Source of the DNA: Pelomyxa schiedti
Lineage: Eukaryota > Protista > Evosea
Assembly: GCA_020536535.1 (NCBI GenBank)
Contig: JAHLWZ010000790.1
Span: 62,001 to 126,000, forward strand
Reading direction: 5' to 3'
DNA length: 64,000 nucleotides
Shown: one piece after another, positions 9,379-16,632 of the stretch
Layout: each line of letters starts with the position of its first letter
Numbering within the stretch: the first letter of the stretch is position 1
Notes under the pieces: model-generated
The model's input: the letters and a program-made list of their open reading frames with translations, nothing else
Database searches by the model: none
Told to the model about the DNA's origin: nothing
Program-made: the position numbers and the translations under genes

Positions 9379-10712
9379 TTAATATGTCTCCAATAATTCA
9401 AACACCCTTCTCATAATCACATCATTCCTGCCAGCAAACCCCTCAAATGTAAGTGGTCCGCCGTTTCGTTCCTCAATAAAATAAGCCATGGCACCATGAA
9501 GGTGAAGTGAAGTGGTCCCTGTCTGGTAGTCCCTGAATACAACTATGTACAAGTCGTAGGAGGAAAGCACTGTGCATTTGTGTTAATTGATAATGCAACT
9601 TGGGGGGTTGGGAAATACATCTTTCTGCAATGTATTCTGTGACTCGTTGCAGTGCACAAGTCACTGAATCAGAGGCTTTTCTTTTAGCTTCCATTGTGGA
9701 AGTTCCAATTCTGAAGTTTTTGAAGGAGTATTTCTTTAAACCGTTGGTTGCAAGCTCGTTTGTTGGGGTGTCAATGAAGTCGACATCATGCACAGTGTCA
9801 TTAAGTAAGGTGTGTTCAGTGATCTGATGTCTTGTTACCCAAACGGGATACCTAGAAAAAAAAGGATAGGGAAATACATCAAGTTCTAATCTCCATTCTT
9901 TACCTTTCTCCCTATCACTAGGGATTGTGCTTGATGAGAGTAAGCAGCATGTGTCAACATACAATGCATACCTGCCACTATGTTAGTTACTGTATATTTA
10001 TTATGTAAGACTGGGTTCTATGGCTCACAATGCTGCCTTCTTGTGGTTTCTATGAACAGGGAAGCCAATATCCTCCATTAACTCCAAGACTACCTTGAAA
10101 AGGCTTGGTTTCAAGGTACTCACTCAACTTGAACTTCCCGCACCCCCTCGTCTCTTCTGTCTTGCTATTATTATTATTTGTGTATTTACCATTGATGCAC
10201 ATCCGGCTTCTTTGACGCGTCTGAACAAAGCTGGTACCATATCGTCATCGTGGTGGTCCACGATGCCAAAAATGTTCAAGTCAGTTCTCGTGGTACCAAT
10301 ACTGTCCTTCAGCCTGTTGTGGTCCACCAAAAATAACTAAAATAAAAAAAAAGCGTGACCAACGAAGGGGCATTAAGGTAGTCAATACCCACGAGTCAGC
10401 GATCAACGATTCAAGTGGTACAACGTTTGTGAGCCTCGGAACACCCGCGGCTTCACATATTGCCCTCGTTTCGCTCCCCTGAGGAGTCAAAACCGCCGGC
10501 ACAATGTCGATGCAGGAAACGTTGCCGTTTTGCACGAAGCACCAATTGAGAAGCTCCGTAGCCAAAAACGTAGAAACAGAGCTGTCCACGTCGGGCTCGG
10601 TATGACCAAGCACGTAAACCGTGGTGCTTTGTTTTATTGTTTGTTGTCGAGTGTGTGCGACAGCAACCAGCTTCTCAGCCTGAACAAGAAGATCTCGCGC
10701 ATGCATGCACAT
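9379..10712 (-). CDS. DHH-family phosphoesterase resembling Mn-dependent family II inorganic pyrophosphatase (PpaC-like)
   Basis: YVLGHTEPDVDSSVS, ETRAICEAAGVPRL, LVDHN, IVDHH, AGCASM, YVDT and a DHHA2-like C-terminus (KKYSFKNFRIGTSTME). Confidence 0.8.
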
Positions 10713-10861
10713 CCCAACTGCGCCTTGTTGTTTGTTTTTCTATTATTTATTTTATTATGTGTGCGAACGAAAATGCCAATTATGCTGTAACAGCGCAGGT
10801 AAACGAAATCAAATTCATTTCGGCTTCCCGAAAAAAAAAATACGAAACTCGAGTGAGAAAA

Positions 10862-13800
10862 CTACGAGCTTTTTTTGGAGGTGGGAATTCGTTGGGTTTT
10901 CGCCCTCATGGCTTCTGCCCTTTCTGGCATCCCTTGTGTTTCGTAGAGGTCGGCCAAGTTGGTGTAGCACAGTGCCATGTCCGGGTGGTTCTCCCCAAAC
11001 ACCGATTTGACCACTTCAGCAGCTGCGGGTAAAAAATGCATTTTGATGCATGCAGTTAGCCACACGTGTTCCGTTGTTTGTTTTGTTGTTGGTGGTGAGT
11101 ATGTTTTGAGTACAGGACTTACCGTCGAGAAGGCTCTCTTCAGCATCAGAGAAGCTGTTGTGATTTAGACGGAGAACCCCGAGGTCATTTAAAGTTAGAG
11201 CAATTGCGGGGTGCGGGGGCCACTTGGGCGGCGGCTCTTTCCCGAAACTGAGGCTGCTGTAGGCCGCTGACAACACTGCGAGAGCTCGGATGTACATTTC
11301 CTGAATTTCTTCAAATGGTCTTGATTCTCTCTTCCAGGTTGTTAAAGGTCCGCGTTACAATGGTTCAATTTATAACCTGATACAGGTTAGCAATGCTATT
11401 CATAACTTCAGCAACATCGGGATGGTTGGATCCAAAATTCTTCTCATATATTGCAAGGGCCTGACTTGGAGTTAAAAATGAATTGCGTCATATGAATTTG
11501 CGCCGGCTCGGGGTGGAGACCAACCTGGAAATACATTGCCTCAGATTCTTCATAGGAACTTGTGTTTCCTGACGAAGCCAACAGGTCAGCCAGGTTACTC
11601 AATGATTGAGCTGTATCTGGGTGCTCATTACCAAGAGACTTCGTTCGAATTTCAAGTGCACGACGATATAATGGCTCCGCTTTTTCCTAGTAGTTGGAAA
11701 GTTCAATAACACCATGACGAATCGCATACAGGTTCATTGCGACGAACATGAAGGACGGCAATATCGTTACATGTGAGAGCTTGTACAATTTTACAATCTC
11801 ATTTTTCGACTAAAAATGAACATACCAATTTCAGGTGCGGACTCTCCAAGGAGTTGTTCTTTGGTAGCAAGAGACTTAAAAATGGTGAGCAAAGCTATCA
11901 TAAGAAGGGAAATTGAAACCAACCATTTGGAAAATCTGCAAGGCCTCATCATAGTATCCCAGATCAAGTTTACCAGCAGCAATTATGTTGAGTGTCTGTG
12001 CTACATTTATATGTATAGGTCCGAATAGTTTGCGCTCAATATGTAATGCTTTGGCAAGAAACTGTTCGCCTTCTGTGTATCTAAAACGAAGATGTAGAAA
12101 GTGAAAAATCGAAATGTTGTAACCTTCCAATAGAGATAAACAGTCCACCAATGTTACCCAAGGACTAGAGTTGACAGTCGGAAAAGGTGAGATAGATGTA
12201 AGATTACTTGAGCAGTATCAGGGTGATATGTGCCGTACACATTTTCCCTTATCTGCAGAGCTTTTTTATAAAGCGTTTCAGCAAGTAAACATTGCCCTCG
12301 GTCTTGATATAGACAAGCTGTACAAAGGTAAGTATCATACTTGGCTTCAAACAAGTGATTACCCAAAGAATTGTAGCTCTGGGCCAGATCGGGGTGCATT
12401 TTACCAAGAGTTTTTTCTCGGATTTGCAGGGCCTCATTGTACCTATATGGATGAGAGAGAGCCGAGCAGAAATTTTCATTACAGTGGTTCAGCTTCAATG
12501 TATTTGCCACGTAGTCTGTAAAGAATTGCTAGATTATTGAGTGCCTGCGCCAGATCTTCATGTGCCTCAGGGTGTGATTTGCGTATGTCAAGTGCTTGCA
12601 AGTAGAGTGGCTCAGACTCGGCAAATCTGTTTAAAAGAGTTACACTGGTATAGTTCCGGACTGTAACCTGCCAGCTTCCCTATAAAGAAAAGCCAAGTTC
12701 TCTAGCCTACCTGAGTTCATTTGTTAATGAGTTATTAAAGGGGAGAAAAAAAAAAAAGAAAACCAGCTAGAGAGGCCGAGTTTAATTCTGATGCATGCAA
12801 GTATTTAGCAAGTTGTAGTGCCCACATATGTAAAGTCTCTGCAGGTTTGAATCGGGACATCTCTGTTAAAAATTTTGCGATGACAGTGATTCTGTCACAA
12901 TCCTACTTGAAACATAAGGGAAAAGAACAATATCGAAGGAGCCACTTTTTCACCCAAAGTGCTGCTTTCTAAAGATTGAACAACTTGTAACACTTTGTTG
13001 TCAATATCAATGTGATCTGCGCAGTCTCTCCAAAGAACAGTAAGTTCGAACCGCAGGTCATCTCCTGCGAGATGCTCCAGGAGCTGTACAAAAATTCAAT
13101 AAACTCCATGAGGTAGGACAAAAGAACTTCGAGGTTTGATAGAACGAGGGCTAGATCTTGCCAATTGCCCAGCCGATGTAATGCAAATGGTAGTTCATCA
13201 CAGACCCTTGAAGTAATGTTCGACTTTTTGGAGGATGAAAACCATAAATTTCCAAAATACGCAGCAATTGCACGTAGGCAATACGTTTGCCTGTCTCCTA
13301 CAGAGGCATATGTGGCAATTGCAGCTTCTCGAACACAAGCATGAGTGCAAGTTAATAAGCCTGATAACTTCCCCCTCGAAATGAGACCTCTCATCATCAA
13401 CATCACACGTGAAAGAGAAGCTTGGGGAATTCCAAGCAAATCACACAGTTCAGCCTCACGTAGGCCTTTCCTTGAAGAGACAATAAAGCACAGAACACCA
13501 GCGAGAATATTTTTATCTGCATATTCGTGCTCCATGCGCTTGAACATGAATGAAATAAGCTCTCTTGTGTTGTTGGCAGAAAGGTAGTAGGACACTTGAT
13601 CATTGAGATTTTCGAAAGTACCTAATAAGTATCTTGGAATAGAGCAAGACTAACTGAAAATTTACCAGAGTATTTCAATTCCTATTATCGGTTTAACAGT
13701 ATTGATAGAAGTAGGCACTTACTTCAAGAAGCAAAGTGGCGTACAAGGGGGTGGCCAGTTTCCGATGAAGACCTGTGGCAATCAGAGAGACCATTGACTC

Positions 13801-16241
13801 GGATATTGACTTCCCACACTCTGCCAATCGTCGTTGGAGGAAATCAACCCAATCAGAGACACCCAGATGTGGTACCTAGAGAAGTTAGAGGACGAAAGTT
13901 GTAACAAACCACTACCCCAACTGTCTTAAATCCCCTTTGCTTGGCAACCTCACTAACAGGGGATCCAGTATTAGCAGAAATTATCACAGTGACCAGGCTT
14001 GAACAGTAAATAATAGGAAAAAAAAAACTGCCGGAAGTACCTGGGAAACTGGGAAGGTAACCAACGGAGTTCGTGGCAATCATGTTTGTTTTCCATTTGG
14101 TCTAATCCTGAAAGAAGAAGAAGGACAGGTCCCCTTGTGCTGGCACGGAAGAGCATTACCTGGAACTGCAGGGAACATAAGTGTTGAGTATGTTTCAATA
14201 AGTTTCATTGAAACTAACTTCCATCGCCAGGTTACTGACTGATTTGTTTTGTAAGTCAATACATTCTTCTCCAAGGAAAAAGCTCAGCTGAGAAACGAGA
14301 CTTGAAAGTAGACTGTTCAGATCAGTTCTTGATCCATTCAAGCCACAAAAATAGGCTATTTAAATTTAAACATTTAAAGAAGCGAGGAAAAGATACCTAA
14401 AGGGAGGACCTCAGGCACATCGCTAACAACTGTGGAAAAAAATGTAGAAAGCAGTGTACTCTTCCCTGAACCTGCCTCTCCTTCCACAAGAATAAGGGGA
14501 GAGAGATCAGCACTGCCTGATTCACTGCTAGACCTCGCCGTTTGGAACCCAGCAGAGTTAGCACTGAGAGAGTTCTTCAACGTTCTAAGAGTCGTCTCTA
14601 GGCCAACCACGATTTTGGATCTTGTTGAAACAAAAGCATCCTGCTCAAGCATATCCCGGGTAGCAGGGGTTAGAGTGCTCTCTGACTTAGAATGAAAATC
14701 CAGATTTTTATGGACTGATTACTTGGGAACTGGGAAATGAGGATATTGTGTAGTTCTCTGTGAATGATACTTGCAGCTTCCTCTGGGGAGCAGTACGAAA
14801 ATACTGGAGCACCGCAACAACGAACTTCATCTTTTAGTTTCTGGAGTTTCTGTCCTTCCTCACTGTCACTTTGAAAGGTCATTCAATATTTTTCACAAAG
14901 CACACACGTTTCAAGGCACTCTTTAATTAAAAATAGAACTCCAGTAGGCACATGTCCGGCTTCAAAATTGAGTGCTGCATGTCTATAAAAGTTTGACTAC
15001 AAATAGAAACATAACAGGATGCAAATACCTAACTTCCAGCTCAGTTACACTCCTGTCCTTGAACTTCGCTATCCATGGAAACTACAAAAAAAAAAAAAAA
15101 ATTGCAAGGGGCCAGATACAAAATTTACCTGTTGCTCTGCAATGCTAAAGGTGCGAGCAAGAAGAGCGTCTTGAGGAGTCCCATTCACATATGACTGATG
15201 CCAGCCATACCTTTCACCAAGGAGACCTGGAAGAATCTTCAAAAGTAAACAGTTATGTGCTCTTACATACAGACGAAAAAAGGGAGACATTTGTCAACTA
15301 TATAGTATTAAATTAGAGTTGTAAATTCTACAAAAAACAACTTTCATTGAGGCAAATCTGTAAGGTTTGTCCATCCTGAGACTGCTCGGTAGTCACACCC
15401 CACCTCAAATCAACCTTGAAACTGTAAGTAAATGAAAAAGTAAAAGTAGAAGCAGGTTCCTACTGGTGATATCGTCACGCCTCTATCCTCAAATTCTTCA
15501 GATAGTGAAGGGAAAACTCTTTTTCTAAGGGAAGAATAGTTATACAATAGAGGAGGAAAAAATGTTAAACATCAATATTTCGCGTTCAGACTGCATATCA
15601 AGGAATCTAGGTGTGTTTTACAAAGGACATTCAAATGAAACAAACACACGTGCTAGACAAAAAAACTCTTGCAGTCCGTTCCAAAGAAGCCTCACAAGAG
15701 GTGCTGGCTCTCATATCCAACCTAGTAGATGAATCAGCCCACCCAGATGTGCTTCCAGGAAGCAATGATCCAGCTGGATCATAAAAGTTAAGTACCAGAC
15801 ACAAAAAAACCAAAACCAAAAAGAGAGCGAGAACGCACTGGATGCAGGCAGTCCCAGAGACACCAAAGGGTCATCCCCGCCACCAGAACCTTGCAAGTTC
15901 CCAGAAGGCGAAAAAGACGAAGAAGACGCCATGGCTAACAGCCGCAGCTGCTCCTCGTGAGCCTTGCACTTGGCCTCATACTCCTCCTGCTCCGTTCTGG
16001 TCTGAGAACCATCGCGCGCGACGTCGCGCTCCTTGGCGCCTCGGTGCAACGACGATGCCGATGAAGACGAAGATGAAGATGAAGACAGCCGGTTGGAGAT
16101 CGTGGATGGTCGGTTTTTCGGGTGCGGGTGTGGTTGCGTGTTCGCGCCGCTGCTGGTAGAATTAAGTGCCGATCTCGTTAGGAATTTCCGGGCCGCGAGA
16201 CCGCCGGTCGACTTTCGGGCTGTTTGTTTGGTTCGCGCCAT
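10862..16241 (-). CDS. DUF4062 - STAND/NACHT-like ATPase - TPR protein (NPHP3/TEP1-like) with an N-terminal histone H3 tail
   Basis: N-terminus [51 protein letters not shown] and SVTELEV (DUF4062); GEAGSGKST P-loop; SRKGLREAEL winged helix; multiple HPDxAQSxNxL kinesin-light-chain-type TPRs. Confidence 0.88.
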
Positions 16242-16632
16242 CTGTTTAATCAACAATCTGGGAAATAATCGGAAAATACTGGCTCGCTTAAAAAGGGCCC
16301 CCGTTGCCTTTTTCGCGTTTCGGAATGCGTGCTCAACAGACTCAGTCCTGAGGCTCTTGGACTCACAAAATTTGGCACAGGTCTACCCCTTTCGTTGTAA
16401 CGGCCACTGGTATTCAGATTGGATTTCTCCTTCCTCTTAGGTACTGTTGAAGCATTCCATCTTCTTGATTCCGAATGGGAACCGAGTACGTGCTTACTGC
16501 GCATGGGTGGAGATATTCACTCAGGGTAGAGGGAGATCTGATCCCAGTGCTGCATCACTTCAGTTGACAAAAACGAAACCCAAACATCAAACATTTAGAA
16601 AAACAAAACAAAAAAAAGCATTCAAAACTTCG

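Follow-up and report, generated by a model that had tools for sequence, protein, structure and literature searches.

Within a 64,000-nucleotide stretch of the genome of Pelomyxa schiedti (assembly GCA_020536535.1, contig JAHLWZ010000790.1, positions 62,001 to 126,000; hereafter the window, numbered from its first letter), a minus-strand gene of the DUF4062-STAND-TPR type is preceded by a short stretch encoding histone H3's N-terminal tail. The tail opens at an ATG at position 16241, and the gene ends at 10862; unless another contig is named, every feature given below is on the minus strand of the window. We tentatively propose that this P. schiedti STAND gene gained a lineage-specific, H3-derived 5′ coding exon, which would act as an H3 mimic.

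The look-alike of H3 residues 1-20 occupies 16179..16241 (ATG plus 20 codons), where 16241..16179 reads ATG GCG CGA ACC AAA CAA ACA GCC CGA AAG TCG ACC GGC GGT CTC GCG GCC CGG AAA TTC CTA. It is identical to canonical H3 at 17/20 positions, including 13 consecutive residues, and likewise at 17/20 to the H3 of the same genome; the substitutions are K14L, P16A and Q/H19F. The similarity holds at the protein and at the DNA level. It cannot be chance: judged by its sequence, the tail descends from the portion of a histone H3 gene that encodes the tail. Its ATG is the first in a 223-codon open frame (16382->15714), in a context with A at -3 and G at +4, and the M-A-R-T-K that it begins provides a Met-Ala start with Arg2 and Lys4 placed as in H3 N-terminal mimicry proteins. 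No histone fold follows, with zero Pfam matches in the exon that contains the tail and, for PF00125, 18 places in the genome and 0 on this contig (C790). Degenerate DNA patterns run over the whole genome found seven H3 gene copies and two identical tail modules and nothing else, while a metagenome scan with a 12-residue tail coding pattern gave 0 matches. The initial annotation of this DNA had described an H3-like tail at ATG 16241, 17/20 identical to H3, changed at K14L, P16A and Q19F and followed by no histone fold, and all of this stands when the sequence is read afresh. These and all other genome-wide searches refer to the assembly named above (52,367,397 bases, 5337 contigs; the published figures being 52.4 Mb and 5337 scaffolds, obtained from seven cells picked by micromanipulation, PMC8887013), which derives from amplified single cells and is incomplete.

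The tail begins a predicted coding exon 1 (15839..16241, 134 codons + 1 nt), an open frame with neither a Pfam family nor RNA coverage, which runs 112 codons beyond the tail. In order, it encodes the H3-like tail, a Ser/Thr/Pro-rich disordered stretch, a run of Ser residues and a short charged segment that resembles a helix (EQEEYEAKCKAHEEQLRLL). A predicted intron 1 of 65 nt (15774..15838, GT-AG, GTGCGT...TACTTAAC...CAG) would join it in frame to exon 2 (15650..15773), which carries the family-canonical start ATG (15714-15712) and the start of DUF4062. The body of intron 1 is T-rich, with TACTTAAC 17 nt before its end, a TTAAC branch-like motif and a CAG acceptor, and its donor, T-richness, branch-like motif and acceptor are all within the range of the gene's 23 RNA- or protein-verified introns. 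Were intron 1 retained, a 176-codon tail open reading frame (ORF) would result, stopping at TGA 15713-15711. This TGA overlaps the canonical STAND ATG, forming an ATGA stop/start overlap at 15711-15714. By codon usage the proposed frame of exon 1 is the best of the six, weakly so. The genome holds at least 12 further DUF4062 loci, many of them with open Ser/Thr/Pro-rich upstream extensions of 65-250 codons; DUF4062 paralogues thus often have long extensions, and a disordered N-terminal extension is therefore typical in this genome. Taking these features together, we lean slightly towards a transcript in which splicing joins exon 1 to the DUF4062 exons, with translation beginning at the H3-like ATG.

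Downstream of the tail, the gene is expressed and has about 30 exons, encoding DUF4062, an NPHP3-type P-loop NTPase and TPRs of the kinesin light chain (KLC) type. Contigs from three single-cell RNA runs, compared with positions 10700-16500 of the window, reveal GT-AG introns, more than 20 in number and 39-100 nt long, on 10902-15191, and splicing is RNA-proven from 15191 to the 3′ end, including three DUF4062-proximal introns. The public protein KAH3758205.1, named 'tetratricopeptide repeat protein [Pelomyxa schiedti]' and called P0001 here, maps to the window in 22 exons; that it is recorded under P. schiedti agrees with the amoebal source that had been surmised from the DNA alone. Its start ATG (14882) sits in an RNA-proven intron (14907-14869): one RNA contig runs from 15191-15129 through a 53-nt exon at 15081-15029 to 14982-14908, and then continues from 14868 onward. 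With its ATG intronic and RNA upstream of it, the public model is therefore 5′-truncated, and it lacks all of the DUF4062 exons (14908-15773).

We compared the 174-residue helical exon of the gene with 1.84 billion cluster representatives, which gave 513 relatives at E <= 0.001. The second-ranked non-self match is P0003, which, like its longer isoform P0173 (EukProt EP01105_P028100), comes from the transcriptome of Mastigella eilhardi; Mastigella belongs to the family Pelomyxidae, as Pelomyxa does. Aligned end to end over 996 residues, P0173 and P0001 share 40% identity; all that we say of orthologues refers to this one, transcriptome-derived orthologue. It starts equivalently to the canonical ATG in exon 2. 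In the family, 0-30 residues normally precede DUF4062, and the 166-residue N-terminal extension of the P. schiedti model is absent from the orthologue and from 149 relatives. The tail and the extension would thus be either a novelty of the P. schiedti lineage or outside the protein altogether.

The DUF4062-STAND-TPR architecture is supported by searches made one exon at a time, with the junctions checked as 10-codon windows against P0001. DUF4062 continues from exon 2 through exons 3-9 (within 14908..15649: 15606-15571, 15524-15464, 15414-15342, 15297-15271, 15226-15129, 15081-15029 and 14982-14908). Single DUF4062 exons (20-40 aa) gave no Pfam match to PF13271, being too short. In exon-wise blastp they are colinear, at 63-76% identity, with residues 9-139 of P0003 and P0004, where Pfam recognises DUF4062 at 61 bits (VDLRWGVTTEQSQDGQTLQICLNE 75%, a second exon 63%, FPWIAKFKDRSVTELEV 76%), and the DUF4062 of P0173 matches the solved TEP1 domain 11gz_A (E = 6e-24). 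The STAND P-loop NTPase (NPHP3_N / NACHT-like; 13723..14868, introns RNA-proven) has a Walker A motif, GEAGSGKS, near 14481-14458 and a Walker B motif, LLLLSGLD; it scores 37.0 bits for NPHP3_N (cut-off 24.8) and 26.6 bits for NACHT, just below the cut-off of 26.7. After it come a region of helical / winged-helix character (NPHP3_hel-like) and the first part of an NPHP3-type TPR domain (12946..13621, found by homologue search), and finally a kinesin-light-chain-type TPR array (TPR_12 / TPR_10 / TPR_NPHP3) with the stop codon at 10864-10862 (10862..12902, all introns RNA-proven). The array reaches 264 bits for TPR_NPHP3 (cut-off 100) and 238 bits for TPR_12, and the TPRs of P0173 match the solved TPRs of kinesin light chain (E = 1e-42). 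The exon-wise matches, NPHP3_N and TPR_NPHP3 bear out the NLR-like layout of DUF4062, P-loop ATPase and TPRs that the initial annotation had given. Between the NTPase and the helical region lies a 16-nt micro-exon (GAATTGAAATACTCTG, 13666..13681) flanked by introns of 41 and 44 nt. It is supported by an RNA contig with 14 extra letters at the 13622/13722 joint, which had been reported as an odd TA..TA joint, and it is also present in P0001 (ELKYSG).

The tail can be compared with the H3 genes of P. schiedti itself. All seven real H3 gene copies carry the tail on a short first exon. In the three genes on C867, C226/C2036 and C240/C5202, a phase-1 intron lies in codon 15 and exon 1 is exactly Met plus 14 residues; in the genes on C712 and C137 the first intron follows after about codon 26. 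The H3 tail, having its own short first exon, would therefore be easy to shuffle as an exon. (The pieces on C2036 and C5202 resemble second copies of the C226 and C240 H3 genes.) Over codons 1-14, the DNA of the tail in our window is 71-83% identical to the seven H3 copies, and the H3 genes are 69-83% identical among themselves, save for the near-identical pairs C226/C2036 and C240/C5202. In codons 2-14, all differences between the tail and the H3 genes are synonymous (7/7 against the closest gene). The tail is evidently not a recent copy of an assembled H3 gene. Recent capture together with an H3 promoter was considered and set aside, there being no similarity between the tail locus and H3 upstream regions beyond homopolymer runs.

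The residue changes are unevenly distributed, with 0 in residues 1-13 and 4 in residues 14-21 (K14L, P16A, H/Q19F and S/A21T). For this contrast of 0/13 versus 4/8 the hypergeometric p is ~0.012, a value computed post hoc. K14L requires three base changes, and all three positions of the codon are altered. Two readings would account for the pattern and fit the sequence equally well: selection at the extreme N-terminus in its new surroundings, or a recent capture of the tail from a divergent H3 variant that the assembly lacks. The changes at 16, 19 and 21 are as expected from simple relaxation of constraint.

The second of the two tail modules bears on the soundness of the locus. A 75-nt module (16175..16249: 8 nt of leader, ATG, 21 codons and 1 nt) recurs with 100% identity at C762:59477-59551; these are its two copies genome-wide, and their flanks are unrelated. 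On C762 a stop closes the ORF after 27 codons and no donor site precedes it, which rules out that tail as part of a kinase gene. The copy sits within a 183-nt patchwork insertion (H3-tail module, spacer, a 35-nt fragment from the end of a miniature inverted-repeat transposable element (MITE), spacer). A paralogous copy of the segment, 97-99% identical and 24 kb distant on C762 (35162-35204), lacks the patchwork and has 31 other bases in its place; its left junction on C762 has TTAAA microhomology with native repeat sequence. We therefore rejected C762 as the source of the tail: the absence of the patchwork from the paralogous copy and the TTAAA junction point to C790 as the template. The C762 copy looks like filler DNA copied from C790 during repair, or possibly an amplification chimera. 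The segment with the patchwork (C762:59357-59551) lies upstream of protein-kinase-like exons.

For the DNA of the window itself, Logan contigs of one DNA run were compared with positions 10700-16500. One contig, of depth 41.5, runs unbroken from the gene body across the junction and takes in the tail's last 30 nt. It ends at 16204, where a 191-nt contig branches into C762 sequence; it stops inside the tail because the 75-nt repeat is a branch node. The same run contains 100% of the 31-mers sampled from 10700-16500. With the junction crossed by a contig and all of these 31-mers present, the DNA that joins the tail to the downstream exon is real. Exchanged upstream flanks would leave the coding sequence unchanged.

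Under the reading we favour, a STAND gene of the NPHP3/TEP1 type would have acquired a lineage-specific 5′ coding exon whose first 21 codons come from an H3 tail. With the 65-nt intron spliced out, translation would start at the first AUG, and removal of the initiator Met would leave a free N-terminus identical to H3 residues 1-13, followed by a disordered, Ser-rich linker of ~150 residues and then DUF4062. Proteins binding or altering the H3 N-terminus, whether unmodified or K4/K9/S10-modified, could dock on the tail or modify it, and the STAND switch would thereby be coupled to chromatin enzymes or readers. That the tail has any mimic function at all is unlikely in our view, if by no means negligible. 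If the fusion is expressed, H3 N-terminal mimicry, documented in human proteins, would most likely be its function, being the best precedented one (H3TMs; Chen et al. 2021, PMC8166343). The resemblance to these proteins lies in a non-histone N-terminus that reads A-R-T-K after removal of Met, a sequence which in H3TMs can engage readers and writers of H3K4; a wider class of histone mimics includes viral ones (PMC6028506). In H3TMs, however, the motif has 4-6 residues, whereas P. schiedti has 13 consecutive residues (17/20 overall), by descent from an H3 gene, and the carrier is a STAND NTPase rather than a chromatin protein, with expression of the tail as yet a prediction. In its domains (DUF4062, NPHP3_N/NACHT P-loop, NPHP3-type helical region and TPRs) the carrier is like nephrocystin-3 (NPHP3) / TEP1-type proteins and the Mastigella orthologue; the orthologue and the 149 relatives differ in having neither the 166-residue extension nor the H3 tail.

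Several observations weigh against exon 1 being part of the protein, and they have to be set beside the alternatives. The initial annotation had a Ser-rich linker spliced into DUF4062; an in-frame 65-nt GT-AG intron can indeed be predicted for this joint, but no RNA contig lies over 15192-16241 in any of the three runs, which stop at 15191, and no transcript joins the tail exon to DUF4062. The link of exon 1 to DUF4062 is a predicted one because the RNA contigs leave that interval uncovered. The gap begins within DUF4062, a domain that is necessarily in the mRNA; the libraries are therefore 5′-incomplete and uninformative on exon 1. Exon 1 is part of no protein in the public annotation, and an exact look-up of P0001 and of the 176-aa ORF returned no record. 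A database of 5.8 billion proteins (74-235 and 107-341 aa) gave no self match for exon 1, with only real H3 at marginal E-values, and no homologue of exon 1 beyond the tail. The GC content at third codon positions is 0.62 in exon 1, against 0.41 for the gene body. This GC-rich stretch has few stop codons in any frame, so that the long open frame is only modest evidence. Lack of the tail in orthologues, which the initial annotation had named as a finding that would refute its reading, is what the one orthologue shows: P0173 begins MALQQDPCCGTRPQGGNLG-VRVFVSSTF, with just 19 residues before DUF4062 and no H3 tail or long extension, P. schiedti retains a Met at the equivalent start (15714), and an H3-like N-terminus occurs in 0/149 of the best homologues. 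If, moreover, the tail was captured recently from an H3 variant absent from the incomplete assembly, the argument from constraint would be void. One alternative is that the ATG and tail are a remnant of an H3 first exon, stranded in the 5′ leader or promoter of the STAND gene, the protein itself beginning at Met 15714 and exon 1 being untranslated, an upstream ORF or untranscribed. We regard this as quite possible, if on the doubtful side. It would agree with the equivalent start in the orthologue, with the family norm, with an exon 1 that has no RNA, annotation or homologue and whose composition differs from that of the gene body, with a tail ORF that, on retention of intron 1, ends at a TGA overlapping the canonical ATG, and with the same 75 nt occurring on C762 as a plainly dead 27-codon ORF. 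Against such a relic stand a frame that stays open for 112 codons past the tail and crosses a well-formed intron in frame, and residue changes of 0/13 versus 4/8, unexpected under decay; its first AUG, in good context, would capture scanning ribosomes if transcribed, and the paralogues do carry long N-terminal extensions. A separate gene, in which exon 1 is an independent, H3-tailed, disordered protein of ~176 residues, is improbable. The unspliced 176-codon ORF does end right at the canonical STAND start, but its last 40 residues (AFSLSFWFWFFCVWYLTF...) translate T-rich, intron-like sequence, it has no homologues, and the next start comes too soon to leave room for a terminator and a promoter.

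The least probable explanation, to which we give very little credence, is an artefact, arising either from a wrong join at the 75-nt repeat or from a chimera formed when single cells underwent whole-genome amplification. The genome does come from amplified single cells, the module is a repeat node at which the Logan contig stops (16204) and the 191-nt contig leads off to C762, and no contig of the DNA run lies over 16205-16500. Yet the depth-41.5 contig crosses the junction into 30 nt of the tail without an alternative predecessor, all sampled 31-mers are in the run, and an upstream-flank swap leaves the coding sequence intact. SPAdes, run in its single-cell mode, assembled Illumina and Nanopore reads, the latter too from seven cells, with k reaching 121 and so exceeding the 75-nt repeat (PMC8887013). 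The assembly chimera at the tail/downstream junction that the initial annotation had wished to see excluded is thus not supported, an independent contig crossing that junction. The other alternative concerns function: a free-living amoeba that houses intracellular prokaryotes would have built an H3 tail, with residues 1-13 intact and K14 replaced, onto a STAND NTPase as a bait for histone-modifying bacterial effectors, so that modification or binding of the bait activates the NTPase and reports attack on, or misuse of, the histone machinery. Plant NLRs carry integrated decoys of this kind, e.g. RRS1-WRKY and RGA5-HMA, and Legionella RomA acts on H3K14. The likeness to the plant decoys would be that a fragment of an effector-targeted host protein is fused to an NLR-type switch; in plants, however, the decoy is a folded domain, whereas here it would be a short, unstructured N-terminal tail that is not conserved, and the P. 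schiedti NTPase is NPHP3/NACHT-like with TPRs, whereas plant NLRs have NB-ARC with LRRs. Oncohistone Lys-to-Met/Ile substitutions inhibit SET-domain methyltransferases, the documented traps being at K9, K27 and K36, and H3 K14 is mainly an acetylation site. K14L resembles them in placing a hydrophobic residue where H3 has a modifiable lysine, but those traps have Met or Ile at K9/K27/K36, and here it is Leu at 14, with 16, 19 and 21 changed too. In favour of an integrated decoy or trap are the NLR-like architecture, an extreme N-terminus that seems constrained, with codon 14 changed at all three positions, and the way of life of the host, P. schiedti being an anaerobic archamoeba with prokaryotic endosymbionts and Pelomyxa a genus that houses intracellular prokaryotes (PMC10579272). 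On the other side, the fusion is without transcript proof, the tail is kept neither in the orthologue nor in any of the 149 relatives, PADLOC recognises only the TPRs (TPR models alone matched), and we found no documented trapping activity for K-to-L at K14. We consider such a bait a slim prospect.

An expressed fusion would be the longest natural H3-tail mimic known to us that is carried by a non-chromatin protein, and the first on an NLR-like switch, and it would link the recognition of chromatin tails to STAND signalling in a protist through a simple peptide bait. A decoy, if true, would be an integrated decoy outside plants, made of an unstructured histone tail; a literature search found no description of a histone tail as an NLR integrated domain. 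The location of the H3 tail on its own short first exon suggests a route by which such fusions could arise. If the fusion is not expressed, the locus holds a stranded fragment of an H3 exon beside a mis-annotated gene, and the value of the analysis is the correction of the gene model.

Some minor observations concern other loci of the assembly. A MITE-like element, of ~270 nt with terminal inverted repeats (CTCTTTGAGTTGGATAACACAAT...ATTGTGCNATCCAACTCAAAGAG), has at least 2 near-identical copies, at C1264:~9700-9950 and C417:~16100-16370. The 250 nt upstream of the tail copy on C762 (59552-59801) are a dispersed repeat, with pieces 81-91% identical on more than 10 contigs, including C757, C53, C1296, C792 and C826. 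Finally, the DUF4062 paralogue at C807:27296-30427 is preceded in the same frame by TROVE/vWA-like sequence (...FVSVDLSGRG...ILVSGFSDAILRFIAERG...), and these sequence features may mark an archamoebal gene of the TEP1-like kind (telomerase / vault-associated protein).

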